Source of the DNA: Oculina patagonica
Taxonomy: Eukaryota
Direction: 5' to 3'
Assembly (NCBI RefSeq): GCF_052425735.1
Contig: NC_135762.1
Span: forward strand, 10,478,001 to 10,542,000
DNA length: 64,000 nt
Translations under genes and position numbers: made by a program
Shown here: in pieces, positions 27,733-56,185 of the stretch
Layout: each line of letters begins with the position of its first letter
Numbering within the stretch: position 1 is the stretch's first letter
The notes under the pieces: model-generated
The model's database searches: none
Seen by the model: only the letters and a program-made list of their open reading frames with translations
Told to the model about the DNA's origin: nothing

Positions 27733-28776
27733 CTAGCGAAGCTCTATCACGTCAACATTGTCTGTTTGAAAAGATGCAATCCTATTTCCAGACAAATGCA
27801 ATGAACGACATTTAAAAATGTCACAGAGATGAAGACTCAAGGTTTTCAAAGCGTGACGATAATTTGAACTGAACGTGAACAGAATAACTGGGTTAATAGC
27901 TGTACTGAAAGATGGAAAAACATAGAAAAACAAACCTGTGAGTATAGTGCATCTATCTTTAACAAACAATGTAGGATGAAACATTTTCAAAGACAGATAA
28001 ATGCAAAGTGGAGTCCAGCAGATAAAAAACGCCGCAACGATAGATATCAATATTTTTGTTATCTTCTGGTGCTGTTTTTGTCTTCGGTTGTTCCTTCGAA
28101 CTTCGTTATTTCTCGGCCTTTTTCTTAGTGCCTTTACAATGCGAGTGTAAAGGATAACCATTGCAATGAATGGAGCGCAGTAAAATATAACAAAACCAAC
28201 AGCGTTGAAAATTGTGTGTGCTGATTTATCCCAAACTACTCTGCAGAATGTTTGATTTTTCACTTGCACAACCTTAGCGTAAAGAAAATAAGGGAAACAA
28301 CAAAAAAGTGGTATGATCCATGTAAACAGTGATAAAATAACACGAGGTGTTCCTTGATCTAAAATCGTCATCTTCAAAGGAAACACAATGGCGACATATC
28401 TGTCCACAGCGATGAGGACCAAGCTCAAGAGGGACACAACTTGTGATATTACTCTAAAGCACAGTCCTAGTTTGCATACAACTGAAGCCGCAGGTTCGGT
28501 GATGAATACTTTACTTGACAGCATCCCTTCAGTTGCATAAAGCGGCCAGTTAAAACAGGCGCAAAAGAGATCGGACACCGCCATGTTGACTATGTAATAG
28601 TTGGTACTCGTTCTCAGGCTTTGGGTCTTTACAAAGGATACTATGACAAGGATGTTGCCAATAAAAGCAGCTAGGCTTACTGTAGATAGAAGAACTGTAA
28701 ACAGCGTGGAAACCACGTCAGGGCAAGGACGTTCATGATTGTAGATATCCGTAGGTTGAAGTGAAGAATTGTTCAT
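27733..28776 (-). CDS. Class A GPCR group B, peptide-receptor-like, intact (347 aa)
   Basis: GN, NMAVSD, C...DRY, W4.50, FC in ECL2, CWTP, NPVILF; seven TM segments. Confidence 0.95.
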   Translation of the reverse strand: MNNSSLQPTDIYNHERPCPDVVSTLFTVLLSTVSLAAFIGNILVIVSFVKTQSLRTSTNYYIVNMAVSDLFCACFNWPLYATEGMLSSKVFITEPAASVVCKLGLCFRVISQVVSLLSLVLIAVDRYVAIVFPLKMTILDQGTPRVILSLFTWIIPLFCCFPYFLYAKVVQVKNQTFCRVVWDKSAHTIFNAVGFVIFYCAPFIAMVILYTRIVKALRKRPRNNEVRRNNRRQKQHQKITKILISIVAAFFICWTPLCIYLSLKMFHPTLFVKDRCTILTGLFFYVFPSFSTAINPVILFTFSSNYRHALKTLSLHLCDIFKCRSLHLSGNRIASFQTDNVDVIELR

Positions 28777-33390: not shown

Positions 33391-34476
33391 TTACTTCGAA
33401 GGCCTTCCTTGTGTCCCTTCTGTAATCTGGCGTAGCTCAATTGTGTCATGGTTGCCGATATGCGATGTTGCAGTCATATTTCTTTCCGTGTTAAGTAAAT
33501 GATCATGGTTACATAGATGAAGGCACCAACTCTTTAACGCCTGACGATAATTTGTACTGAACAGAAAGAGAATGAAAGGATTAATTGCGGTGCTAAAAGA
33601 TGGAAAAACATAGAAAAACAATGCTAGAAATAGCCTGCATTTATCTTTAGCAATGAGCGCTGGATGAAACATTTTTAAAGCCAGATAAACGCAAAGTGGA
33701 GTCCAGCAAATAAAAAACGCTGCAACAATCGAAATCAATATCTTCACAATCCTCTGGTTGTTCCTTTGCCTCTTATTACTTAGATGATTTTGCAATTTTA
33801 GTGTAGCATTGTTTGGTCGCTTCCCTAACGCTTTTACAGTCCGAGTGTAAAGGATCACCATTGTAATAAACGGAGCGCAGTAAAATATGACGAATCCAAC
33901 ACCGTTGTAAATAGTGTTCATTGATTTGCTCCACGTAGTTCTGCAAAATGTCTGATCGCCTTCTTTGACAATTTCGGTGTAATGAAAGAAAGGAAATCCC
34001 GAGGTAATTGGTATGATCCATGTTAACAATGCCAAGGCTAGTCGAGCTCTTTTTCGGCGTAACATGGTCATCTTCATAGGGAAAACAATGGCGACGTATC
34101 TGTCCACGGCGATCAGGACCAAGCTTAAGACGGAAACAACTTGTGATATTCCTCTAAAGTACATTCCTAGTTTGCATACAACCGTCGCCATAGGCTCTGT
34201 GATGAATACTCGACTTGTCAACATCCCTTCAGTTGCATATAGCGGCCAGTTGAAACAGGCGCAAAAGAGATCGGAGATCGCCATGTTTACCATGTAGTAG
34301 TTGGTGCTGGTTCGAAGGCTTGGGGTTTTCAGAAAGGATACTATTACAAGAATGTTGCCAATGAACGCTGCTAAAGTTATAATGGATAAAGCCACTATAA
34401 ACAGCGTAGAAACCGTTTGAGAACAAGGTGGTTCCTGATTGAAGTTATCCGGTGTTGGCGCCGTAGAATTATTCAT
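33391..34476 (-). CDS. Class A GPCR group B, intact (361 aa), paralog of 27733-28776
   Basis: Same motifs (DRY, CWTP, NPFILF); shares long identical peptides such as DLFCACFNWPLYATEGML. Confidence 0.95.
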   Translation of the reverse strand: MNNSTAPTPDNFNQEPPCSQTVSTLFIVALSIITLAAFIGNILVIVSFLKTPSLRTSTNYYMVNMAISDLFCACFNWPLYATEGMLTSRVFITEPMATVVCKLGMYFRGISQVVSVLSLVLIAVDRYVAIVFPMKMTMLRRKRARLALALLTWIIPITSGFPFFHYTEIVKEGDQTFCRTTWSKSMNTIYNGVGFVIFYCAPFITMVILYTRTVKALGKRPNNATLKLQNHLSNKRQRNNQRIVKILISIVAAFFICWTPLCVYLALKMFHPALIAKDKCRLFLALFFYVFPSFSTAINPFILFLFSTNYRQALKSWCLHLCNHDHLLNTERNMTATSHIGNHDTIELRQITEGTQGRPSK

Positions 34477-36373: not shown

Positions 36374-38879
36374 TTAAGTTTCGTTACGTAAATAACTTTG
36401 AATCCAGCCACAACAGCAGAGACTATAAATTCTCGATAGTATTCTTTTTAAACTAGCTGGCAAGAAATGACAATGATCTGATGAGTATGGCGTTCTTCTC
36501 CAGCAACTGTGATGCTTTTATTTGGCTTTAGAAGAGCAGACTTAATTAAACAATACTCTTTTTGGTATGCATAATTTTTTTTAATTGAGTTGAGGTAAAA
36601 AACGGCCCAACTAATTACAGTCTAATTACACAAAACCTTTTTAAAGAGTTAAAGAATTAAAATTGGCCATATCATTACTTGTTTCGTATATTTTTTCGTT
36701 TTAATTTTATCGCACTCTATGGGTGGTTTCAAAATCATTGCGAAAATTTCAAATGCTAAGGCATTTTAAAAGTTCACGAGTATTGCAAAACACCCAAAGA
36801 AAACAATGACAAGTATATGATTGAAACATCATTTCAAAGAAACGAGTAAACACCTGCTTCTTTCAAGGAGTATTTGAGTTTTGCATTTGATAAACTTAAA
36901 TTAGCATTAAAAAACAAAATTTATTTTTCATGCTTTTGGTTTACAAATAGCAGGAATTTGTTTTTAATGACTATCTAACGCTAATACGCACAGGCCTATT
37001 TGACCTAATTGTGACTTTCTTGACTAAACGCATATTAATTTGTTCGTGGAGTTTCTGTAAAACATACTTCCACATTTTTAGTTCAAGTTGAACGTGAGAT
37101 AACGGTTAGAAAAGCGAAAAAAATCTAACAACAAATGAAGAACAGTTTGACAACAACGGTACGTTGGAGCAGAGAAGGACAAGGGACTGAGTTTATTTAA
37201 ACCCAAGTAGGGAAATAATAACAATTATGACTAAAGACAATCATGGCAGTTCTTGTTCGAATTTTAAGCAACTGGAAAGGATCGTTAATCAAAAGATAGC
37301 GGGAGACAATCTTTGCAATGTTTTAATTGTAAACAAACTTGTCAGTGATGCTGTCGATTATTTCAAGTGTCATTTACGGTTCGCTTTTTTAAGTCTTTTG
37401 AATCATGCAAGTTTTTGTTATTTTTCGTTCAGTTGTTGCTATTCTGACACAGTCCGGAAAGGTAAAAAACGATATACTACAACAGTACCGAGTATCGTTC
37501 AGAAACTGCGCGATATGATTGTTTTATTAAATAATTTCATTTTGTCCGTGTGGATGAAAAACGTATCCATTTAACAACCCATTTTGGTTACTGCAGTTGA
37601 TAAGTAAATTAAATTAAAAGTACAGTTACTTACTTGTTTTAGCTCAGTCGTTAGGTCTTGGTCTCTGTAGAAGTCCGTAAGCGGTTAACAAGACGAAACA
37701 CGTTCTTTAGAAGACAGCGCGTACACGTCTGTACTTCGATTGAACAAATTATTTAAGGGTTGATTTTGCCTCGAGAGATTTGCATATCAGATTGCTTTTT
37801 AATGAAGGTGTTAAAACTGATGTGATAAAAATTTCTTGTCATGTTTCCAACTAAGAGAATGGAGTTCAAACAAAGATAATTATTGGGTTTTTCATAAAAT
37901 TCACGATGAAGATTTTTATCTAATTTCTTTCGGAAGTAACATGGCACCATTGTTGAAATTATTCAAACAAAACAAAAAGTCTATTTTTTCCCGTTGTAGA
38001 TTTTATTCTATGTTGCTTTGCGTTGACCAAAAGTTTTACTGAAATAGCAATATTAAGTATAAAAAGTACGATAAGTTCTCTTTGTTATTCAAATTTTCTC
38101 CCAGTTTAAAAAAATGACTTGCTATTTTTACAGCTGATTGCTCTGTGGTTGGCAAATCAACACATCGACAGGCAAGATTGTCAAACCCATTGAAAAGCAA
38201 ATTATCCCTGTACTTGGAAAACATTTATGTTATCCCAGAAAGCTTTATTAAACTCTTATTAAGCAACACCATTAACGTAATTGAACTACTTACCTCAGTT
38301 ATCGTGAAAGTCTTTCTATCATTTTTTTGCTTTTATGAGACATTCTCAAATACATTGTTGTGTGTAAAAACGATACACATGTATTTCATTTTCACGTTGA
38401 GAAACAATAGGCCCAACCGAGAGCATTTTGCAACTGTTTCATTTGATTCCGGTACAAATTCTACATCCAGCATGAGATCAGGCTCTAAGTTTAGTCGCTT
38501 TTAATTAACAACTAGGGGTGGCTATTTTATATATCATCGCTTAATTCGTTATGTAAATAGAACGCAAGAGTAACTTTCATAAATCATCACAATTTTGCTG
38601 AAAACTCCAGTATCCGCTCGATAAAAAGATGTGGGCTATTTGACGTCCCCTTTTAAAATAAGTGTTTGTTTTCAAATGAAGTTCTCAAAAGGGTTGGACT
38701 TCAAGCAAACGGTGAAAATTTTAAACTGTCAAAAATACCAATAAGTTCTTTTCACTGTCAACAACAGACAACAACAGTCAACTTAGTGCAAAGTGTCATA
38801 AAACCTTTAAGCTGGTATGTGTGGTGTGTGCAGCTTTTACTGTCAACCGTCAAAAAACGTTCAGATGGACTTAATTTCT

Positions 38880-39190
38880 CGGGGGGGGGGGACTCCCACA
38901 TGAAACGGACGGGGATGCTCGTCGGAAATTTTGAAAAGAACCCCGAAAAGAGACCAATCTGGGTGTGGCTCAAGCTTTTCTTGACCCCTAAACGATACCA
39001 AAAAACTAAGAATGGAGTTTATATTTGTATATTTCCTGGTGTGTAACCCTAAACGAGACCATTATGGCTAAAAATATTGGCGTTTTGGGCGTTTTGCCCG
39101 GAACACCCTAAGCGAGACCGAAATAAATCCGAAAGCGAGACGACGAGCATCCCCGTCACTTCATGTGCGAGTCCCCCCCCCCCCCCCCGG
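38880..39190. mobile_element. MITE with poly-G/poly-C termini
   Basis: CGGGGG..GACTC.CACATGAA..ACGGGGATGCTCGTCG / CGACGAGCATCCCCGT..TTCATGTG.GAGTCCCC..CG. Confidence 0.8.
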
Positions 39191-39558
39191 GCTTAATTTG
39201 GTGATGGCTCCGACTATAAGCTGACAAATTTATTATTGTCAACAGTCGAAGGATTCCGGCTTAGGTGTAGAAATATTTGGGTTTACCTCGGTGTAAAAAA
39301 AACATGACAATATTTGCTTTGTTTTAGAACTATTGTTTTCCTGCTTTTATTCTTTTTTTTACGTTATTTGTAAGTCTGACAGCATTTTACTACGAGGATG
39401 TAATATATCAAACACGAGACAGCGTTTTTCGCTTATGTTTTGAAAGAAGGGTCTGGCTTAATGCTAATTTAGTTGCCCTTGGCCACTGACTAGGCCATCT
39501 TTACACACTCAGAAAGAAGCATAAAATTACTCGAATTACGTTACGCTTGCAAACTTAC

Positions 39559-39679
39559 ATTGATTAGGAGTGCAGAGTTTGTTTAACGGTCCACTTTGCA
39601 TTCCTCCTGTTGCAAAAGAATCCATCGATGGAACGAGGATCAGGGCGAAAAGGAACACAGCAACCCAGAACAGCTTCAT
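39559..39679 (-). pseudogene. Orphan inverted copy of pentraxin exon 1 (signal peptide)
   Basis: Reverse complement of 41687-41807, followed by the same GTAAGT donor; no downstream pentraxin exons seen on the - strand. Confidence 0.8.
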
Positions 39680-39803
39680 GCGTTTAAATTCCAGTAACTT
39701 CAAAATCAAAAACAAAATGTTTATGATGAAAATGAAAGACTGCATGAAGGCATATTTAAGTAGAGCGCTGAAAACTCATTGCAAATTCTGAAGAAATATT
39801 TAA

Positions 39804-40196
39804 AGGGACTGTGTCAGGAATTTTAGTGGAATTAAGGCATGGGAAAATGACCATCAAGCTCAGTGAAATATAAAAATAACCTCTTAAAACAGTGAAGGAG
39901 CATTTCAATATCACAGCAAATACAAAAGAAGGAACGGATGGCCAAAAGTGACGAAGATTGAAACGGATTGCGATATGAGTTTTTGAAATGTTGTTGGGCT
40001 GAACAGTTTCCAAAGTTACTCTCGTTTGCTTGTAACTTTAAAATTTTAACGCCCGGGAGACAAATTCGGTTTCAATGAAGCTACGGTTTTCTCATTTAGA
40101 TCGATAAAAGTAATTACCTTGCAAACATTAGGATTCATAGCGAGTATTTGGCAAAACTAAATAAAATAAACTTCACTCACCCGTGACACAGTCCCT
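39804..40196. mobile_element. Kolobok-like MITE inside the left arm
   Basis: TTAA-AGGGACTGTGTCA ... TGACACAGTCCCT-TTAA. Confidence 0.85.
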
Positions 40197-41169
40197 TTAA
40201 CTCAATATGGCGTGAGCAAGAACTGGGAAAACATTTTTTTTTAAGTTGAAACTGATGTCTACTTACAATTTTGCTGGCAATTGTTCTACTAGTAAAGGAG
40301 CAGTTCGCTGATTAAAATTTCAGCTGCTGTCAAACCTCGCGGATGGAACTATATCAAATCTTCAAACGACCAAACGGTGAGCTAAAAGCCGAAAAAACTC
40401 AAATTTATAGCTGCCAAAATTACTGACACGCCTTTGAAGGCGTCACAGAATATTTTCATACATTCTCCAATTTCCCCCCGAGAGATGATCTTGTTAGCAC
40501 TTCTGTTTAAGTCACTACAATAGTAAGATCCAATTTAATATAATGTGTCAGAGTGTTACAGTTCATAAATTATATGATGATGTAACTTTTCAAAAGCTAT
40601 TACGAGTGCTTTGAAAGGGTTGATGCGCAAAAAGCATAATAACAGGTGAAAGCACAAACACATACTACTTATTAACCGAGAGTGAGGTCATTACAGGGGA
40701 ATCTCAGACCTCGGCCTTGATGTATTGACCGAGCGATAGCGAGGTCAATACATCAAGCACTCGTAATAGCTTTTGAAAAGTTACATCATCATATAATTTA
40801 TGAACTGTAACACTCTGACACATTATATTAAATTGGATCTTACTATTGTAGTGACTTAAACAGAAGTGCTAACAAGATCATCTCTCGGGGGGAAATTGGA
40901 GAATGTATGAAAATATTCTGTGACGCCTTCAAAGGCGTGTCAGTAATTTTGGCAGCTATAAATTTGAGTTTTTTCGGCTTTTAGCTCACCGTTTGGTCGT
41001 TTGAAGATTTGATATAGTTCCATCCGCGAGGTTTGACAGCAGCTGAAATTTTAATCAGCGAACTGCTCCTTTACTAGTAGAACAATTGCCAGCAAAATTG
41101 TAAGTAGACATCAGTTTCAACTTAAAAAAAAATGTTTTCCCAGTTCTTGCTCACGCCATATTGAGTTAA

Positions 41170-41562
41170 AGGGACTGTGTCACGGGTGAGTGAAGTTTAT
41201 TTTATTTAGTTTTGCCAAATACTCGCTATGAATCCTAATGTTTGCAAGGTAATTACTTCTATCGATCTAAATGAGAAAACCGTAGCTTCATTGAAACCGA
41301 ATTTGTCTCCCGGGCGTTAAAATTTTAAAGTTACAAGCAAACGAGAGTAACTTTGGAAACTGTTCAGCCCAACAACATTTCAAAAACTCATATCGCAATC
41401 CGTTTCAATCTTCGTCACTTTTGGCCATCCGTTCCTTCTTTTGTATTTGCTGTGATATTGAAATGCTCCTTCACTGTTTTAAGAGGTTATTTTTATATTT
41501 CACTGAGCTTGATGGTCATTTTCCCATGCCTTAATTCCACTAAAATTCCTGACACAGTCCCT
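41170..41562. mobile_element. Kolobok-like MITE, right-arm copy, ending ~125 bp upstream of the pentraxin ATG
   Basis: Mirror of 39804-40196. Confidence 0.85.
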
Positions 41563-41686
41563 TTAAATATTTCTTCAGAATTTGCAATGAGTTTTCAGCG
41601 CTCTACTTAAATATGCCTTCATGCAGTCTTTCATTTTCATCATAAACATTTTGTTTTTGATTTTGAAGTTACTGGAATTTAAACGC

Positions 41687-43316
41687 ATGAAGCTGTTCTG
41701 GGTTGCTGTGTTCCTTTTCGCCCTGATCCTCGTTCCATCGATGGATTCTTTTGCAACAGGAGGAATGCAAAGTGGACCGTTAAACAAACTCTGCACTCCT
41801 AATCAATGTAAGTTTGCAAGCGTAACGTAATTCGAGTAATTTTATGCTTCTTTCTGAGTGTGTAAAGATGGCCTAGTCAGTGGCCAAGGGCAACTAAATT
41901 AGCATTAAGCCAGACCCTTCTTTCAAAACATAAGCGAAATTAAACACCGTTTTATTTTTAACAGTCTTCAGATTAACAATGTTTTCAAGGCAACCATGCG
42001 AAGAAGCCAGAAGATCTTAAAAAAAGGAGGGAGTTGTTTAGTAGATATGAGTGGTTTAATTTGAATTAGGGTTTCAAGGGAAACATAGCAACGCCTGGTA
42101 AACTAATTAATTGCGATTTGTTCTTCTAGTGATGAATTTCATTTCCTAATTATTTTCGAGAATTTATAATCTCGGGTAAAGTTATCGATGAAATTTGGCT
42201 AGTTAATGTAAACAGTTACTCTTAGGAATAGAAATCATAGTAAATGTAGAGTAAGGGGGCATTTAATGGCCTTCTGTATCAGTAGATGTTATATAATAAC
42301 ATTAAACAATGCTGTCAGTTTCAGAATACCGAATGGTGTTTCCAGAACGCACTAACAAAAATTACGCGTTGAAAGAAAACGCCTTTGGGAATGGTCTCAA
42401 GGCAGTTACGTTGTGTTTCTTTGCAAAGGACAATCCAAACGACTCCAGTAAGAAGTTTCAGTGCCCTTTCAGTTACGGAGTTTCCGTATCACACAACGAG
42501 TTGACTTTGTGCACCTCCCCTACGCTACGAGTGATGGTCAATGGAGAAATAAGGTTTGTATAAGCTTTATTTACGGTATTCAGCAATAATAAGTACCAGA
42601 AGCTTATGTAAGTACGGATAAAATCCATTCTCGGAGACCTAGGAGCAGTTAGTGGGGGTGAGGGAAACGCGAAACTGCGGGGAAAAAATAATACAAAGGG
42701 AATACAAAGAACTTTTCTGCTCAATCAGGACATGCAGGAGGCAGTATTCAGATAGCTGTTTGGAACTGGCCTGGTAAGACTCTTTCCCCAGGGGCACCTT
42801 TCACTCACTCCAACTTTTCTTTGCCGATTTTTTTCTCGAAGTTTACCGTTTCTGTACATGCATTCTGTATGTGCTTCCAAATTTCATTGCCAAAATACCA
42901 TAAAATACAATTAATATTTTTCTCTTTATAGGGATACCGACGTCAACATGGAAGATGGTAACTTTCATCACATTTGTTTCATCTGGAAAAACTCCGGTGG
43001 AGAATACCAGCTTTTCATGGATGGTAAGATGGTGGCCAATGGCATGGGCCTCAAAGCGGGGTACACGATTCAACAAGGAGGTTCCGTGGTTCTCGGACAA
43101 GATCAAATCAAGCTTGCTGGAGACTTCGATCCAGATGAAGCTTTCGTTGGCGAGCTGACAGAAGTCAATGTGTGGGACACAGTTCTTTCGCGTGGTGCTG
43201 TTGTAGCCCAGCACAACTCCTGTCGCGTCAGAAAAGGATCAGTCACCAGGTGGTCTCAGTTCAAAACTGCTGTTCACGGCGGAGTGCAAGTGGTTGACTC
43301 CACCTCAATCCCCTGA
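41687..43316 (+). CDS. Secreted short pentraxin-domain protein; exons 41687-41807, ~42319-42553, 42932-43316
   Basis: Exon 1 MKLFWVAVFLFALILVPSMDS (signal peptide) then GTAAGT. Exon 2 FPERTNKNYA..LKAVTLCF..PFSYGV..NEL. A phase-2 GT..AG intron joins ..EIR|DTDVNMEDG. Exon 3 has a pentraxin-signature-like HHICFIWKNS and GGSVVLGQDQ..AFVGELTEVNVWD. AATAAA at 43339. The exon 2 acceptor is uncertain. Confidence 0.85.
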
Positions 43317-46019: not shown

Positions 46020-47068
46020 ATGAACAACTCCACTCACATCCGCGATCCCACTGAAATCCGTCCTGCCCGTACGCCGTCTCTGTTTCATTCACAACGGCCA
46101 TGGCTTTTATCAGCACAGCAGCCTTTATTGGTAACATTTTGGTGATTGTCGCAGTGTACAAAACTCCAAACCTTAGAACGAGCACCAACTACTATTACGT
46201 CAACATGGCGGTTTCTGATTTTCTTGCCAGTCTCGCCACCTGGCCGTTGTACCTTACTGGCGAGGTCATTACAAGCAGTGGAAGTCTACTCCAAGGTTCT
46301 CTGGCAACTTTTAGTTGCAAACTAGGAACGTATTTAAGAATTGTCTCTTTTGCAGTATCGATTTTAAGCCTGGTGTTGATTGCTGTCGACAGATTCGTCG
46401 CTATTGTATTTCCTTTGAAAGCGACGCTGATAACACCAAAAGTAAGAGCAGCTTTGTTGTTTGCAACGTGGTTGATACCAATAGCGCATTGTATTCCTAC
46501 GTTCTATTATTCCAGGCTTGAAGAAATCGGTCTACAAACATTCTGCAGATCTGGACTGAATACTTTGTTAGTGATCTACTACATAACTTCTGTGGCCATA
46601 TATAACGTTACACCGTTGATTGCAATTATCATTATTTATTCTCGTATTATGCGCGCTTTAAAAAGAAGACAGCAACCAGATTTAACCGATGCGAACGATA
46701 CTAACTCTCAGCAAAGAAGAAGCAAGCAGATCAGAAACGTACTGAAAATATTTAAATCAGTTGTTGTAGCGTATTTTGTATGCATTTGTTTGTTTGGGAT
46801 ATATTCAGTTCTAGACATGACATTACCTGAACTTCATAACACAGACAAGTGCAACCTTATTCGAGGTCTTTTTGATTTTCTCCTCCCATTACTTAGCACA
46901 GCTATTAATCCAGTCATTTTATTTTCACTTAGTACTAATTTTCACCACGCTCTGCAGACGCTGTTTCCTTTTTCACTCGGTAATTATAAATGCCGTTCAT
47001 GTTGTCATGTTTCTCTGCACCGAGAAGATATTTCCCTACCAGAACTAGTGACATATAGGCACACCTGA
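46020..47068 (+). pseudogene. Class A GPCR group C copy 1, -1 frameshift in the N-terminus (ORF from Met 46100 is open)
   Basis: The ancestral start ATGAACAACTCC at 46020 is out of frame; GAAATCCG here vs GAATATCCG in paralogs (~46056). Could be a sequencing error. Confidence 0.75.
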
Positions 47069-47247
47069 TCAAGAGCCGTGAAATGTAAAGATAAGGACGA
47101 AGGAACAAAAAATGGTGAAAACGTAAAGCGCAATAAATACCAAAAGCAGAAAATCTTGCGAAAACATGTTGCCTTGGAAAAATTACGTCACGAAGGCAAA
47201 ATGTATAATTATAATCATTGTCTCACAAGTCATATATTATACAGTTT

Positions 47248-47428
47248 NNNNNNNNNNNNNNNNNNNNNNNNNNNNNNNNNNNNNNNNNNNNNNNNNNNNN
47301 NNNNNNNNNNNNNNNNNNNNNNNNNNNNNNNNNNNNNNNNNNNNNNNNNNNNNNNNNNNNNNNNNNNNNNNNNNNNNNNNNNNNNNNNNNNNNNNNNNNN
47401 NNNNNNNNNNNNNNNNNNNNNNNNNNNN
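47248..47428. other. Assembly gap (N run) followed by low-quality T-rich sequence
   Basis: Seen directly. Confidence 1.
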
Positions 47429-48729
47429 TTTTTTTTACCCCTTTTTTTTTTTTTTTTTTTTTCTCTTAATTTTTTTTTTATTTCTTTTTTTTCTTTTTTT
47501 TTATATAAAAATAAAAACAATTTTCTATTTAAGATCTTTATACTTCCATATGGTAGTTGTATCCTTTAAACCCTTTTTCGGGTTTTTACATCAATAACTC
47601 TGGCAAAATTTGAACAGCTTTTAAACGCAATCGTGTAAGAGGTAAATTAAAAGTTTCGGCCTAACAACACATGCACCGTTTGTTCAAGAAAACCTTCATA
47701 TCGAAAATGAAAACAAATATCTGATAAATGAAAACTGGATTACTGCGCTGGGGGATTTTCATCATAATGTTTCATTTTTGAAAACAATGCCATTAATTTG
47801 ACGCCTCCTGTCCTGAAACCTTTAATCAGAAAATACGGTTGAGGAGAAGACTATGTCCATTTTTAATAAATGGTTTTGCAATGTTCATTTTACATAAAAA
47901 AAGGCCACAATTACAATCTTATAGATGCATGCTAGCGGTAGTTTCATTTAATTTCTTTGTATATAAGCCATCATAGTGTGGCAATGTAACGCCTTCAATG
48001 AAGCCTTTAACAGAAAAATGCCGTTGTGGAGAGCACTAGAGCATTGATTTGTTTGGCAAAAGCTATTTTCTGTGAAAACTAGCACAAAATATTTTTATTC
48101 CAGAAGCTCCAGAAAGAAATCCCTTTCATCTTGCTATATGTCAAACGGGACTGCAGGTGGTCACACTTAAGATAAAACAAAAAACAAATAAACGCCATCA
48201 GGCCTTTTTAGAAGCAGGATGGTGTGATCATTTTAAGTGTCAGTCTTCTTAAGAGGTCGTTTTAAAATGTTCGAAATCTTTTTTATTCCCTTGCACCATA
48301 AGTGCCAATGACAAAGTGGCGTATGGAGCTATTATGACTATTATTATCAAACTACGACACCATTTAACCTGTGAATAACAAAGAGTCGTTCTTATTAATT
48401 ATCCTAACAATAGCGAAACCTTATCCAGCAAAAAGGTAATAGGAAATCATCGACAAACGAAGGAACATTTTTTTTTTGATTTACCGCCAAATTCTCACAA
48501 CTAAAGTCAATTAAAAAAAGCGAGCACACTTAATGGATGCTCTGTGTTTACATTTACAGACAACGCATAACACATTTTAAGCCATCTTTGTAGCTTGTAG
48601 CTAACAATGATAAAAGAGCCTTTACAAAATAGTGAAAGGACATTTTTCCGACGAAAAATAACATTGTTCATTGAGACACTGCTAAAGTAGCTTGGATCCA
48701 AAGACGGAACGTTAACAAGAACCGTCAAA

Positions 48730-49785
48730 ATGAACAACTCTACTCTCATCGATCGCATTGAATATCCATCCTGCCCGTACGCCGTTTTTATTTCCATCAC
48801 AACGGCCATGGCTATTATAAGCTCAGCAGCTTTTATTGGTAACATTCTGGTGATTTCCACAGTGTACAAAACGCCAAGCCTTAGAAGAAGCACCAACTTC
48901 TTCTATGTCAATATGGCTGTTTCTGATTTTCTCTCCAGTCTCACCACTTGGCCGTTATACTTCATTGAAGAGATGAGAAAAGGCAGTGAAAGTTTACTCC
49001 TAGGTCCTCTGCCAACTGTTAGTTGCAAAGTAGGACTGTATTTTAGAATTATGTCTTACACAGTTTCGATATTAAGCCTGGTGTTGATCGCTGTCGAAAG
49101 ATTCATCGCTATTGTATTTCCCTTCAAAGCGACGCTGATAACACCAAAAGTAAGAGCAGCTTTGTTGTTTGCAACGTGGTTGATACCGATAGCGCATTGT
49201 ATCCCCCTCCTCTTTTGTTCCACGCTTGAAGAAGTCGGTCCCGAAACATTCTGCAGAGCCGTTGACTGCAATAGTTTGGCGATGTTTATCTACTACACAA
49301 CTTCTGCGGCCATATATACCGTTGTTCCACTGACTGCAATAATCATTTTTTATTCTCGTATTATGCACGCTTTAAAAACAAGACAGCAACCAGAATCAAA
49401 CGATACGAACGATGCTAACTCTCAAGCAAAGAGAAGAACGCAGACTAAAAACGTAATGAAGATATTTAAATCAGTTGTTGTAGCGTACTTCGTTTGTATT
49501 TCTCTTTTTGGCATATATTTGGTTCTCGAAATGACATTACTTAAACTTCATAGCATAGACAAGTGCAAGTTCATTCGAGGTCTTTTTAATTTTCTTCTTC
49601 CATTGCTTAGCACAGCTATTAATCCAGTCATTTTATTTTCACTTAGTACTAATTTTCGAAACGCTTTACAGACGCTTTGTCCTTTTTCACTCGGTAAATG
49701 CTGTTCGTGTTGTCATGTTTCACTGCATCAAGAAAACATTTCCCTACCAGAACTGATAAAATATAGGCAGACCTTATCAAGATAA
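48730..49785 (+). CDS. Class A GPCR group C copy 2, intact (351 aa)
   Basis: MNNST start, GN, NMAVSD, C...ERF, W4.50, FC, NPVILF. Confidence 0.95.
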   Translation: MNNSTLIDRIEYPSCPYAVFISITTAMAIISSAAFIGNILVISTVYKTPSLRRSTNFFYVNMAVSDFLSSLTTWPLYFIEEMRKGSESLLLGPLPTVSCKVGLYFRIMSYTVSILSLVLIAVERFIAIVFPFKATLITPKVRAALLFATWLIPIAHCIPLLFCSTLEEVGPETFCRAVDCNSLAMFIYYTTSAAIYTVVPLTAIIIFYSRIMHALKTRQQPESNDTNDANSQAKRRTQTKNVMKIFKSVVVAYFVCISLFGIYLVLEMTLLKLHSIDKCKFIRGLFNFLLPLLSTAINPVILFSLSTNFRNALQTLCPFSLGKCCSCCHVSLHQENISLPELIKYRQTLSR

Positions 49786-50045
49786 ATGTAAGATTAAGGA
49801 CAAAAAAGAAGGTAAATCGCAAAAACTGAAAGCCCATTAAATGACACTTGAATAACAGAAAAGCTTTTGAAACATTTCACGTGAGTTTCTTCAAAGTATA
49901 ATTATTATAGAAAACGTCTGATCATTGTTATATCCAAATCTCTTGAATTTCGGAATAAAATGTTCCCCAGCACTAATTAAGATGGTCGAATCATAAAAAA
50001 TCGATTTTTAAAGTTTCAAAGGATATAGCTATATATTGTTCATAC

Positions 50046-50354
50046 TAGTTATACAACGCTTTCGAGTGGTATACTATGGAATATCGCACGAGTCACTTGT
50101 ATTTTCTCGGTATACACACGAGCCTTTAGGCGAGTGTGTATACGAAGAAAATACAAGTGACAAGTGGGATATTCCATAGTTTACCACGAGAAAGTGTTGT
50201 GTAACTATTTTATACCATGCCATAGAAAATACGTTTACTTAATTTCATCGAGAATAAGATCGCAGCGCACGATGGGAAGGTTGGGTTGAATACCGTCGAA
50301 TATACAATGGCTTTCCTGTATTCTGATTGGCTGTATTTTCTTTGGCATGGTATA
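50046..50354. mobile_element. Double-hairpin interspersed repeat
   Basis: Hairpin 1: TAGTTATACAAC..GTCACTTGTATTTTCT.GTATACAC / GTGTATAC.AGAAAATACAAGTGAC..GTTGTGTAACTA. Hairpin 2: TTTATACCATGCCA.AGAAAATAC / GTATTTTCT.TGGCATGGTATAAA. Absent from paralogous flanks (~52970, ~60250). Confidence 0.8.
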
Positions 50355-51678
50355 AAGGGTGTTATGAACGTTAAAAACATTATAGCGAAACCATCTGTGT
50401 CCATTAACTTAACACTCTTATTTTTTTGTTTAAACTTCTTTGAGACCAAATAAGCAGTAATTCACCTGAAACAAATAAAAGTTATCTCAGCAAGAGTTTT
50501 TGTCAAATTAGACCACCATTGTAGATGAATTTTACACAAAGAAAGGACTAAAAACAAATAAAAACAACTCCTTTGTCTCTAAATAAGTACATGGACGTTT
50601 CGTTTCCCTTCTGCCATATGATAGTTGCAATCTTTTAACCCCTGCTATTTTTGTCACTAACTCATTTATTTCATTTTCTTTTTTTTCCAAAAATATTTAT
50701 TAGCATACTGGTCTCTTCCTTATTAACTATGTCCTTTAATGTCAACGAATGGCTAATAATACAGCTTGCATTTCTTCTCCGCTTTATTCGTGAACGTTTT
50801 TGAAAAGTTTAATGGGAAAACCATTTGAAAGAACTGTGAATGAAAATCAGAATAACATGTGGATTACAAAGTGGTATGGGATTTTACTTCAGTTATACCA
50901 ATGTGCCACCACAGTGCTGCTTTTATTAAATACAACGCGACTAATTTAACTTCTGCTTCAACACCTTTTACCGGAAAATACGATTGCCCAGAAGGCTTTT
51001 AGGATTTATTCGGCAATATCCATTTTCTATTTAAATTCTCAACCTGGCCAATGTCAAATAGTTAATGCAGGTCAGGGATCGGTGTCAACGTTAAACCAAT
51101 AAATGCCATCGAGCCTTAAAAGCAAGGTGGCACATTATTTGTTCATGGCATGATAAATGTTTCATTTGCAGTGTCCTGCCCGTGAAGTTGCATTAAATTG
51201 GGGCGAGAGCTTTGAATTTCATTGCCTCATGTGCCAATGACAATGTGACGTATATATATGAGCTATTATTGTCAAACTGCGACACGTCCATTAACAGAGG
51301 GTTAAAGAAGAGTCATGAACATATTAATTCTCAAAACAATATCAAAACATTATCCAGCAGACGGGTAATAAGAACAGAAAATCATCAACAAGCGAATATA
51401 TCTTATTAATTTACCGCCAAATACTCAGGTCTAACCTAAATATAAAAAGCGAACAGACTTAATTGATGCCTTTTGTTCAGTTTATTACACGGGAAATGCA
51501 GAACACATTTTAGCCAGCTTTACAGTGATGTCTAGAATTTATTTTGAGTGATCAAAGAAACAACATAGGAATCAGCCAAAATGCATTTTTGTGACGTAAA
51601 ATACCATTGTTCATTGAGATATAGCTGAAGTAGGTTTGATCAAATCCTGAAAACGGAACGTTAACAAGAACCATCACT

Positions 51679-52707
51679 ATGAACAATTCCACTCACACTG
51701 ATCATAATGAATATCCGTTCTGCCCGTACGCCGTCTCTGTTTCTCTCACAACGGCCATGGCTATTCTCAACTCAGCAGCTTTCATTGGCAACATTCTGGT
51801 GATTGCATCAGTGTGCAAAACGCCAAACCTTAGAACAAGCACCAACTTTTACTATGTCAACATGGCGGTTTCTGATTTTCTTGCTAGTTTAACCAGCGGG
51901 CCATTCTACTTTATCGGAGAGAGCAGTAGAAGACTACTCCAAGGCTCTCTAGCAAATCTTGGTTGCAAAGTGGGAGCGTATGTTAGAATGGTGTCTTTTA
52001 CAGTATCCATTCTTAGCATGGTATTGATTGCTGTCGACAGATTAATCGCTACTGTATTTCCCTTGAAAGCGACGCTGATAACGCGTAAAGTAAGAGCGGC
52101 TTTCTTGTTTGCAACGTGGTTGATACCACTGGCACATTCTATCCCTGTTTTCTATCATACCAGGCTTAAAGAAGTCGGCTCCGAAACATTCTGCAGATCA
52201 GTGGGAAATAGTCTTGCGATGGTGATCTACTACATAACCTCTTTAGGTTTATATAACTTTGCACCACTCATTGCAATTATCATCATTTATTCTCGTATTA
52301 TGTATGCTTTAAAAACAAGACAGCAACCAGAAATAAACGATGTGAACGATACTAACTCACGACGAAAAAGAAACAAGCAGACCCAAAACGTTATGAAGAT
52401 CTTTAAGTCAGTTGTCGTAGCGTATTTTGTTTGCCTTAGTCTTTTTGGTGTATATGCCGTATTATTAATGACATTACCTGAATTTCGTAGAATAGACAAG
52501 TGCAAGTTTATTCGAGGTCTTTTTAATTTTCTCCTTCCATTGCTTAGCACAGCTCTTAATCCAGTCATTTTATTTTCATTCAGTACTAATTTTCGTCAAG
52601 CTCTGCAGAAGTTATGTCCTTGTCCACTCGGTAAATGCCGTTCGTGTTGTCATGTCTCTCTGCACCAAAAAAATATTTCCCTACCAGAATTAGTGGCATA
52701 TAAGTAG
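51679..52707 (+). CDS. Class A GPCR group C copy 3, intact (342 aa)
   Basis: Same motifs; DRL in TM3; 3-codon deletion in ECL1. Confidence 0.95.
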   Translation: MNNSTHTDHNEYPFCPYAVSVSLTTAMAILNSAAFIGNILVIASVCKTPNLRTSTNFYYVNMAVSDFLASLTSGPFYFIGESSRRLLQGSLANLGCKVGAYVRMVSFTVSILSMVLIAVDRLIATVFPLKATLITRKVRAAFLFATWLIPLAHSIPVFYHTRLKEVGSETFCRSVGNSLAMVIYYITSLGLYNFAPLIAIIIIYSRIMYALKTRQQPEINDVNDTNSRRKRNKQTQNVMKIFKSVVVAYFVCLSLFGVYAVLLMTLPEFRRIDKCKFIRGLFNFLLPLLSTALNPVILFSFSTNFRQALQKLCPCPLGKCRSCCHVSLHQKNISLPELVAYK

Positions 52708-54387
52708 ACCGTATCTAGATAAATGTAAAGGACGAAATAACGCCGACATAAATGTAAATAACAAAATCAAGAAAAATGTACAGGACGAAAAAACGTTAAG
52801 GACGAAAAACCTCTTAATGGTTAAAACTAAAAATCCATAAAAAAGCAAGAGAAAACAGTTTCATTATTTAAACAAATACAAATTGTGATTTTGATTTTTA
52901 TTCCTCATAAAAAAATAACCTTTTGATCAAACTCTCTTGAATCTCGACAGTTTCAAAAGACAGAGCTACTGTAGGGGACCCGGATTTTAAAAATAAAAAA
53001 TAATAATCAAAGAACGATGAAAACATTATAGCTTAACCATCAGTGTCCATTAACTTCACATTCTTGTTTGGTTGCCTCTCTTGGTTAAAACGTGTTTGAG
53101 AACAAATAAACTGTAAAAACTATCTGAGCAAGTGTTTTTGTCATATTAGAAAACTATTTTAGAAAGATGTGGCAATAAGCATGGTCTTCATGATGAAAGC
53201 TTGTCGAAAGAAATTTTAGGAACCAAAAATCGAGTGTGGATAAATAGGTTATTTTAGGCTAAATTTTACACCGATTGGAATTTTTGCAGCAACCCTCACG
53301 GGGTTTTCACCGTAATATTGCAGAATTTGTTTGACTATCCTTGTAAAGATATTTCCTTTTTTTCATCACGTGGAAGTCATCGAAACGCTTCCAACGCTTA
53401 GAAGCTTATAGTTTTTTTTATCTTTCTTCCCGGAACCTTCTTAACCAAACCAAATATAATTATCGTGAAAACTTCCATTTAAAAGTGATGGGACAAAGAC
53501 CGTTTTTTTTACAAACCTCTTATTGAAACGGTCCCCGAGAAGCATTGGAATACGATTTCTTCCACGTTGTTGAAATTGAGTCTGTTAATGCAGGAGTTCT
53601 ATACGTCAATTGTGCAAAAAAAGCGAGATTGCATTGGAGGCCAGAGTCTTAATTGTTTCGTAATCACTATTCTGCGTGTGCGGTCGCTTCAATACTGAAA
53701 GCAATATTTTTTTTTCCAATCCATTGTCTCATAAATTGCAAGGACAATATCGCATGCAAAGTTTTCATGGGTAGGAGTTCTTTCATTATCCCTATGGGTG
53801 TCACGACACCTGCAACGCTTAGGAGTCAGAAGGCAAATTACACTTTGTTAAAGAAACCCCTCTTGTTAAAAAGGAAAACAGATATTTGCCGTATTCAGTA
53901 TGGATTGCAAATTCAGAGTGCTGGTGGAGTTTCATTATAGTGATTCATTTTTGTATATACTGTTAGTAATTTGACACCACCTGTTCTGAAACCCTTGGAA
54001 AATGCCTTTGTGAATAAGACTATATCATATGGTTTGGCAATTTTCTTTTCCACCAAAACGGTTACTATTGCAATCTTCTAGATACACAAAAAAATAACTT
54101 TTTTCCACCTCAGTACACGTCAAACAGTTAAAAATGTCAACATAAAGAAAAAAGGAGGTCACCACACTAGGAGCAAGAGGGCGCATGATTTTGTTTCAAG
54201 TGTGCTTCGTGTGAGAATACAGAGAATCCTCAAAGGCGAACTTCGCTTGATTCAACACCACATGTTTAGAAATATCTTTAATATAAATGTTTGGCAATCA
54301 GGCAAGGGAAAAAGAAACAAAAAAACAGTAATTGTTATAATTCTTCATTTTGTTATAGTTAAAGGAAGATGGACAGGAACCTTTATC

Positions 54388-54414
54388 ATGAACAACTCCA
54401 CTCACATCGATCCG
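54388..54414 (+). pseudogene. Stub of a deleted group C GPCR (first ~9 codons, MNNSTHIDP)
   Basis: aggaacctttatcATGAACAACTCCACTCACATCGATC matches paralog starts (46020, 48730), then jumps into the upstream module of the next copy. Confidence 0.7.
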
Positions 54415-54596
54415 AGTTAAAATCTTTTGCTTTGAATAGGTGCCACATCTTTTAATTCCCTTGCTTCAAAAGTGCCATTGACAATGTGGCGTATATAGCA
54501 GAAATTATTGTCAAACGGAGACACATCCATTAACCAGGGAGTAACGAAAAGGCATGAACATATTAATTTTCCAAACAATACCAAACTATTTTAATA

Positions 54597-54818
54597 GGGG
54601 AGCAGGGATGGCGCAGTGGTGAGAGCGCTCGCCTCCCACCAATGTGGGTTGAGTTTGTTGTTGGTTCTCTCCTTGCTCCGAGGGTTTTTCTCCGGGTTCT
54701 CCGGTTTTCCTCCCTCCTGAAAAACCAACATTTCCAAATTCCAATTCGACCGGACAGAGGACCCGCATGAGCGCTGATGTGGCTTCCTCTCTAAATGTAG
54801 TAGTTTATTTTTTTATTT
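54597..54818 (+). mobile_element. tRNA-derived SINE with V-domain-like body; B box apparently deleted
   Basis: GGATGGCGCAGTGGTGAGAGCGCTCGCCTCCCACCAATGT head; GGGTTTTTCTCCGGGTTCTCCGGTTTTCCTCCC body; T-rich tail; absent from paralogous upstream modules. Confidence 0.8.
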
Positions 54819-55130
54819 TCCAGCAGACTGGTAAGGAGAACATAGAAAATCGTCACAAGCGAATAGCTTCTTGATTTACTGCCATATTCTCCGATCCTAA
54901 GTCAATAAAAGAGCGAACAGAGTTAATTGACACTTTGTGTTTACATTACACCGAAAACACCCAACACATTTTTAGCCATCTTTACAGCTTGGAGTTATCA
55001 ATTATCATAAAACCTAGACAGAAGAAACAACGAAAAGAAACTTTTTCGACACAAAATATCATTGTTCGTCGAGGGAATGTTGAAGGAGATTGCATCAAAC
55101 CCAAACGGAACGTTTACAAGAACTTTCTCA

Positions 55131-56185
55131 ATGAACAATTCTACTCACATCAATCTTAATGAATATCCGTCCTGCCCGTACGCCGTCTCTATATTCTTCA
55201 CAACTACCATGGCTGTTATCAGCTTAGCAGCTTTCATTGGTAACTTTCTGGTGATTGTCACAGTGTACAAAACTCCAAACCTTAGAACAAGCACCAACTA
55301 CTACTACGTCAACATGGCGGTTTCTGATTTTCTTGCCAGTCTCACCACCTGGCCGCTGTACGTTACTAAAGAGGTCACAACAAGCAGTGGAAGTCTACTC
55401 CAAGGTCCTCTGGCAACTGTTAGTTGCAAAGTAGGAATGTATTTCAGACATGTGTATTTTACAGTATCGGTTTTAAGCTTGGTATTGATTGCTGTCGACA
55501 GATTCATTGCTACTGTATTTCCCTTCAGAGCGACGCTTATAACGGCAAAAGTAAGGGCAGCCTTGCTGTTTGCAACCTGGATGATACCATTAGCGCATTG
55601 CATCCCGCTTTTATATTATTCCAGGCTTGAAGACGTCGGTCCCGGAACATTCTGCAGATTTGGTTGGAATAGTTTGGCGTTGGCGATCTATCACATAACT
55701 TCTGCGGCTATATATAACTTTGCAACACTTGTTGCAATTATTATTATTTATTTTCGTATTATACACGCTTTAAAAACAAGACAACAACAAGAAGTAAACG
55801 ATGCAAACGATAAAAACTCACAGCAAAGAAGAAGCAAGCAGACCCAAAACGTAATGAAGATATTTAAATCAGTTGTGATAACGTATTTTGTTTGCCTTTT
55901 TCTTTCTGGTATATACTTAGTTCTAAAAATGACATTACCTAAACTTCATAGCATAGACAAATGCAACTTAATTCAAGGTTTTCTTCATTTTTTTCTTCCA
56001 TTACTTAGCACAGCTATTAATCCAGTCATTTTGTGTTCATTTAGTACAAATTTTCCGGTCAAGCTCTGCAGAAGCTATGTCCTTTTTCACTCGGTAAATG
56101 CCGTTCGTGTTGTCGTGTTTCACGGCACCAAGAAAATATTTCCCTACCAGAACTAGTGACATATAGGCACACCTTCTCGAGATAA
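55131..56185 (+). pseudogene. Class A GPCR group C copy 4, +2 frameshift just after TM7
   Basis: Start by paralogy is MNNSTH at 55131; AATTTTCCGGTCAAG vs paralog AATTTTCGTCAAG at ~56055; the ancestral tail and stop (56183-56185) are out of frame. All seven TMs are intact, so it may be functional or a sequencing error. Confidence 0.7.

Follow-up and report, generated by a model that had tools for sequence, protein, structure and literature searches.

Comparison With Described Rearrangements

Near-identical inverted arms around a short single-copy spacer characterize the fold-back inverted duplications described in humans, as well as rearrangements attributed to fork stalling and template switching or microhomology-mediated break-induced replication (FoSTeS/MMBIR). 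A structure of this kind was found at the 5' end of an immune-type pentraxin gene in a 64,000-nucleotide (nt) stretch of the coral Oculina patagonica (assembly GCF_052425735.1, contig NC_135762.1, positions 10,478,001 to 10,542,000 of the forward strand). This whole stretch is called the window below, and positions are counted from its first letter. The upstream region and the first exon of the gene occur there a second time, in reverse orientation, to the left of the gene. On balance, we consider it probable that the assembled sequence represents a real structural haplotype of O. patagonica, formed by an inverted duplication with deletion that is polymorphic. The locus shares with FoSTeS/MMBIR-type events the very short microhomology at its junctions (0 and 3 nt), a break inside a palindromic repeat capable of forming a hairpin, and the loss of DNA at the insertion point. 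It differs from them in that the arms measure 1.2 kb, the structure is interstitial, and the 5' end of a gene is all that is duplicated. In addition, the mechanism is read here from the sequence, and one junction is unconfirmed in independent reads.

Two other systems are comparable. As in the staggered-break inversions of Drosophila, one block of the locus (a fragment of a repetitive element named R, a unique segment named S1, and one arm) is inverted, the arm is duplicated in reverse at the other end, and the native contexts are divided between the two copies. However, the staggered-break model would require that the left flank had previously abutted the truncated R, and other haplotypes carry about 320 nt of different DNA at that place. 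The palindromes of the primate Y chromosome also consist of near-identical inverted arms and a spacer, and conversion between arms could make an old duplication look young. Unlike the present locus, those palindromes extend from 10 kb to the megabase range and contain whole genes, and conversion between the arms described here is a possibility. The rearrangement is of a known kind and the locus is an ordinary structural variant, which opens no new question and reveals no new kind of system. If confirmed, it would provide a small inverted duplication in a coral in which the junctions, the native contexts, and a repeat insertion preceding the event are all legible from the sequence. It would also be a natural example of palindromic repeats seeding rearrangements, with a promoter and a signal-peptide exon freed to face new DNA. 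In practical terms, the locus marks a spot of structural heterozygosity in the O. patagonica reference, and gene models and mapped reads there call for care; the GenBank model of the gene already lacks exon 1.

Structure of the Inverted Repeat

Repeat finding and a base-by-base comparison gave two arms of 1185 nt each, which are complementary at 1184 of 1185 positions. The single mismatch (40107 A against 41259 C) falls within a miniature inverted-repeat transposable element (MITE) contained in both arms. The arms are separated by a spacer of 143 nt (40612–40754), and the match between them breaks off sharply at the outer as well as the inner ends. An earlier description of this DNA, made from the letters alone and referred to here as the sequence-only reading, had reported 1185-bp arms with about one mismatch and a 143-bp spacer, and both approaches reproduced these values. 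It had also assigned to each arm about 930 bp of upstream DNA, the MITE, exon 1, and a splice donor, which agrees with the 932 nt that we counted upstream of the ATG at 41687. Its statement that only the plus-strand copy continues into a full gene likewise held, since exons 2 and 3 follow the right arm alone.

The repeat is unique in its surroundings and in the genome. Within the window there is no second inverted repeat of 150 nt or more. When the MITE was left out, the arm sequence matched only two sites in the whole 529-Mb assembly, both of them at the pentraxin locus; for arm, left flank, and intron 1 alike, the assembly contained no paralogous or haplotig copy. The site lies 10.5 Mb within a contig of 34 Mb, away from the contig ends. 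A chance origin is dismissed, and the comparison supports inverted duplication of the 5' end of the pentraxin gene. Pattern scans of Joint Genome Institute (JGI) metagenome contigs with arm-end and S1 patterns gave no match, and no account of how the nuclear assembly was made was found in the literature.

The features of the locus are listed in Table 1. Contigs of four independent sequencing runs, described below, continue from the arm into S1, so that this transition is the native context. The native surroundings are split: far-upstream DNA (40612–40661) persists beside the left copy, the gene body beside the right copy, and the original is intact in neither.

Table 1. Features of the duplicated pentraxin locus, with positions in the window.
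Feature	Position	Strand	Description
Left arm	39427–40611	-	Inverted copy: upstream region, MITE, exon 1, donor, 132 nt of intron 1
Right arm	40755–41939	+	Upstream region, MITE, exon 1, start of intron 1 of the presumed working pentraxin gene
J1	39426–39427		Outer new junction, left flank to left arm; 0 nt microhomology
J2	40611/40612		Arm to S1; natural junction
J3	40754–40757		Inner new junction, truncated R to right arm; 3 nt microhomology (AAG, 40755–40757, common to both sides)
J4	41939–41940		Right arm outer end into intron 1; natural junction
S1	40612–40661	+	50 nt, unique in the genome; native continuation of the upstream region; beside the left arm only
R	40662–40757	+	First 96 nt of a high-copy element of >300 nt, cut inside its palindromic stem
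MITE, left arm	39800–40200		TTAA-flanked, terminal inverted repeats TTAAAGGGACTGTGTCA; carries mismatch 40107
MITE, right arm	41166–41566		Mirror of the left-arm MITE
Left exon 1 copy	39559–39745	-	Putative signal-peptide coding part 39679–39559; upstream in-frame ATG 39745; donor GT 39558–39557 toward the left flank
Exon 1, coding part	41621–41807	+	RefSeq ATG 41621; putative signal peptide MKLFWVAVFLFALILV from 41687; GTAAGT donor 41808
Exon 2	42319–42553	+	Single copy
Exon 3	42932–43316	+	Single copy

Independent Short-Read Contigs and Graph Simulation

Positions 39000–42400 of the window were compared with Logan contigs from four runs, each belonging to a different study. X1, X4, and X8 bear three different species labels, and X2 is labeled as a coral metagenome. 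X1 was the best-matching run, and its contigs match the reference perfectly. Arm contigs ended exactly at 41939 in X1, X4, and X8 and started exactly at 39427 in X2, while the left-flank contig ended exactly at 39426 in X1 and X4. Right-flank contigs began at 41911 in all four runs, giving a branch point at J4 in independent reads. At the inner end of the left arm, contigs of X1, X2, X4, and X8 crossed 40611 from the arm into 40612–40661. X1 then continued from S1 into R, as the reference does; contigs of X2, X4, and X8 departed from the reference exactly at 40662 and ran on for about 320 nt of non-reference sequence. Because these three runs diverge where R starts, R is missing there in at least one haplotype of each of those samples. 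The insertion of R at 40662 is polymorphic, being absent in X2, X4, and X8 and present in X1 and the reference.

The depths given here are mean contig depths and not raw-read depths. In X1, five arm contigs had depths of 25.7–30.6 and three flank contigs had depths of 17.7–19.6, a ratio of about 1.5. This corresponds to three arm copies per two flank copies, and thus fits a mixture of the repeat with a single-copy haplotype. The sequence-only reading had named depth over the arms as a check on its duplication; X1 gave an excess, and X2 a mixed result, with arms at 15.6 and 10.4 against flanks at 10.5–12.1.

The positions of the contig ends were compared with those in a de Bruijn graph (k = 31) of the assembled sequence, either alone or mixed with a single-copy haplotype. 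In the simulated homozygous repeat the left-flank unitig reached 39456, and in the mixture it ended at 39426, as it does in the contigs. The arm unitig ended at 41939 in both models, and without the repeat no break would be expected at that position. Since the flank end at 39426 arose only under the mixed model, a second, single-copy haplotype is needed. The repeat haplotype thus looks to coexist with single-copy haplotypes and to be heterozygous in the best-matching sample, not fixed.

Other variation was observed close to the ends of the arms, and the locus is a structurally variable spot. In X1, two arm contigs overlap by 15 nt at 41805–41819, beside the exon 1 donor (exon 1 ends at 41807); contigs of X4 and X8 break at 41793–41819 and have a T>C change at 41823. 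The pattern at 41805–41819 suggests that some copy of the arm has either an insertion flanked by a 15-bp target duplication or a further breakpoint. The right-flank contigs run from 41911 to 42065 in X1, X2, and X4 (to 42039 in X8) with branch points at both ends, and the next X2 contig starts at 42036. This implies an alternative allele, either an indel or a replaced segment, from 41941, two bases past the arm end, to about 42035. An inversion with a 29-nt staggered duplication was also considered for the flank contigs that start at 41911 and was rejected in favor of the simpler variant allele from 41941. A transposon terminus at the end of the left flank was rejected as the cause of the break at 39426, as the flank repeat spans 39261–39400 only. 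Further to the left, a MITE-like element occupies 38874–39200. Its terminal inverted repeats are long and contain runs of G/C homopolymers (ttaatttctcgggggggggggactcccacatgaa...), and short-read depth over the element amounts to tens to hundreds of thousands.

Proposed Origin of the Duplication

If the repeat is a polymorphic inverted duplication with deletion, a 1.33-kb block comprising part of intron 1, exon 1, the promoter region, 50 nt of far-upstream DNA, and the beginning of R would have been copied in reverse before the pentraxin gene, taking the place of the DNA formerly there. The order of events may have been as follows. Element R would have inserted beside S1, next to 40661. A strand copied rightward would then have left its template at 39426, so that J1 was formed without microhomology, and copying would have resumed in reverse on the opposite strand at 41939, traversing the arm and S1 and ending in R, 15 nt past the hairpin loop. 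Finally, a switch back at the inner end of the arm, via the common AAG, would have formed J3, and copying would have gone on through the gene. On this putative route, a stalled replication fork would have switched template twice. The same product could have resulted from an inversion whose staggered break measured 1.2 kb, or from end-joining of a fragment in inverted orientation. Among the DNA lost between 39426 and the arm would be a segment of at least about 290 nt that is present in other samples, together with the remainder of R and the mirror of S1. A symmetric fold-back at the hairpin of R itself was rejected as the final structure, since the right side has no mirror of S1 and of R 1–51.

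The break at J3 lies within the palindromic part of R. The hairpin left there consists of a stem at 40716–40730, a loop at 40731–40742, and a stem at 40743–40757; its DNA fold has a calculated energy of -24 kcal/mol (z = -6.1), and its core has 372 matches in the genome at up to 3 mismatches. All intact copies of R read GCCGAGGTCTGAGATT after ...CATCAAG, where the arm starts instead at this locus. In the R family the conserved 15-bp hairpin is part of a longer palindromic stem. The hairpin beside the inner junction is the remnant of the longer stem of intact copies; since pairing extends further in those copies, the truncation itself partly explains why the break appears to fall right at the hairpin's base. 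No family in Rfam matched element R, and it was rejected as a hammerhead element on this basis.

The sequence-only reading had called the inverted duplication very recent. The duplication stands, but the data do not establish a young age: runs with other species labels show the boundary signature too, and the arms of a palindrome can stay identical through gene conversion. As for its consequences, an inert stub of promoter and exon 1 is the most likely description of the left copy. Its output would be at most a short read-through transcript, whose unspliced frame would encode 47 amino acids (or 69), as in the right copy.

Alternative Explanations

Several results weigh against a polymorphic inverted duplication with deletion as the source of the assembled layout. 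Both simulated models predict a break at 40611, and no run shows one. Presumably the contig builder pruned the 60-nt path of J3 beside the R-type repeat, whose depth is in the tens of thousands; this assumes that its clean-up rules remove such paths. The contig joining the arm to S1 has a depth of 27.9, where about 24 is expected, and the flank contigs start at 41911 and not at 41910, which points to the further variant allele from 41941. No listed contig spans J1 or J3 with at least 31 nt on each side. The contig depths of X4 and X8 are too fragmentary for copy counts. Finally, more than one arrangement seems to be present in each of the four runs, an excess of heterozygosity for a rare and recent variant.

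These points bear on a possible but doubtful alternative, in which the breakpoints are real and the layout is not that of one true haplotype. Two arrangements would have been merged or shortened by the assembly, yielding the 143-nt center together with J3; they may be, for example, an inversion bounded by 39426 and 41939, or a palindrome long enough for its arms to take in S1 and R. Such a merger would account for contigs of four runs that pass 40611 unbranched where the assembled layout predicts a branch, for an arm-plus-S1 contig as deep as the arms, and for the absence of J3 from the listed contigs. Additionally, the left flank, the arm end, and the right flank act as shared segments with two continuations each, as in an inversion heterozygote, and the 15-nt overlap at 41805–41819 and the alternative allele from 41941 to about 42035 are other variant signatures nearby. 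However, assemblers do not invent junctions with a 3-nt overlap, and J3 resembles a junction formed in vivo in its microhomology and in its break within a palindromic repeat. A plain inversion also predicts an arm depth equal to that of the flanks and not 1.5 times as high, and one difference in 1185 arm positions is below the expectation for two haplotypes of a heterozygous coral.

A second alternative concerns the function of the left copy. Along the lines of the sequence-only reading, which proposed a symmetric, back-to-back promoter, this copy might be an active leftward second promoter, giving rise to a new secreted peptide or to a chimeric or antisense transcript toward a neighboring gene for a G protein-coupled receptor (GPCR), or it might act as a cruciform-prone fragile site; we regard this as unlikely. 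The left arm has everything upstream of the donor, including the transcribed first exon of a gene supported by RefSeq. A distance of 5.1 kb separates its donor from the next minus-strand gene, a GPCR open reading frame (ORF) at 33391–34476, and the minus strand has AATAAA motifs downstream, at 39351 and 39234. On the other hand, all downstream exons are lost from the left copy, and no run recorded as RNA contained the stretch. Exact look-ups of the exon-1 frames of 69 and 47 amino acids were blank; those of the exon-3 ORF, the RefSeq protein, and two small ORFs over J3 and over the transition from S1 to R were blank as well or gave short exon-3 contigs that stop short of the arms. In a collection of 5.8 billion proteins, no protein of 147–469 or 38–121 amino acids besides the pentraxin itself contained the exon-1 peptide. 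The results for RNA, exact look-ups, and the peptide are all weak negatives. A spacer of 143 nt should also greatly lower the instability of cruciforms and hairpins, compared with spacers of less than about 20 nt.

It is quite improbable that the repeat is a fold-back or amplification chimera, caused by a palindromic long read or by template switching of phi29 or during the polymerase chain reaction, in a genome with one copy. Consistent with such an artefact, the arms are near-perfect and their sole mismatch sits in the MITE, where polishing can err; J3 was not seen in short-read contigs, and the assembly offers no alternative haplotig for comparison. However, contigs of four independent studies break exactly at the outer boundaries, and the arms have extra depth in X1. 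An artefact of long reads is unable to put such breaks into Illumina-type data of other samples. Moreover, there are two junctions 1.3 kb apart, the spacer is asymmetric and made of native DNA plus a repeat fragment, no adapter sequence is present, and the locus lies inside a chromosome-scale contig and not at a contig end. The sequence-only reading had named a chimera of this sort as the main alternative and had argued weakly against it; the exact breaks and the depth of X1 support that doubt.

Highly improbable, finally, is the combination of an old polymorphism across Oculina species, arms kept alike by conversion, and a left promoter transcribed toward the GPCR genes that gives a new secreted peptide or regulates the receptors.

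The Pentraxin Gene and Its Neighbors

As part of the polymorphic duplication with deletion described above, the right copy would be the working pentraxin gene. Splicing of 41687–41807, 42319–42553, and 42932–43316 gave an open protein of 246 amino acids with a hydrophobic N-terminus (MKLFWVAVFLFALILVPS), which was read from the sequence and is encoded by the same exon in the RefSeq model. For the Pfam family Pentaxin (PF00354), exon 3 scored 79.5 bits (cut-off, 25 bits; E = 3.4e-22), and exon 2 matched weakly (19.9 bits). The RefSeq protein XP_078371803.1 (268 amino acids) has an exon 1/exon 2 splice identical to the one given here and starts at the upstream in-frame ATG at 41621. It is the same model extended, so that exon 1 and its splice are independently annotated. 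Its name, neuronal pentraxin-1-like, is the result of automatic naming. The GenBank model ACROYT_G018587 (201 amino acids) begins in exon 2, without exon 1 or the signal peptide, and the two NCBI models of the gene (41621–43316) conflict over exon 1. Exons 2 and 3 matched NCBI proteins at 100%, and no second copy of them was found in the genome. A search of the same genome with the exon-1 peptide returned the two arm copies and nothing else. Exon 1 has the same sequence in both arms, and 132 nt of the intron after the donor at 41808 lie within the right arm.

The gene resembles classical short pentraxins of the CRP/SAP type in that a small first exon, here encoding a putative signal peptide, is followed by the pentraxin domain, which PF00354 places here in exons 2 and 3. 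In contrast to those, the coral gene is one of at least 150 pentraxin-domain exons, and its nearest paralogue is 51% identical. Many of the 150 or more exon-3-like matches in the genome are found in tandem arrays on the contigs C2, C4, and C5. The two closest paralogues (49–51% identity) lie on the minus strand 1.4–8.4 kb to the left of the window (contig positions 10469590–10476639). A search of protein representatives with exon 3 gave distant pentraxins alone, at up to 63% identity, and no orthologous locus.

The arm element is a MITE with a TTAA target site. It is about 400 bp long and has 17-nt terminal inverted repeats, TTAA flanks, and a short non-coding body. More than 3500 first-look candidate copies of the family were counted, with 88–90% identity, and in ten aligned copies the homology stops at TTAA.

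The pentraxin locus lies between two arrays of rhodopsin-type GPCR genes that point away from each other. To the left, ORFs were found on the minus strand at 27733–28776 and 33391–34476; to the right, they are on the plus strand from 46100 on (46100–56156). Identity is 66% within the left array and 46% between the left and right arrays. The sequence-only reading had called these neighbors group B GPCRs, a label that can only be its own, as Pfam assigns them to the rhodopsin type (7tm_1). A run of 181 N (47248–47428) follows shortly after the GPCR ORF at 46100–47068 and lies inside overlapping ORFs at 47078–47597.

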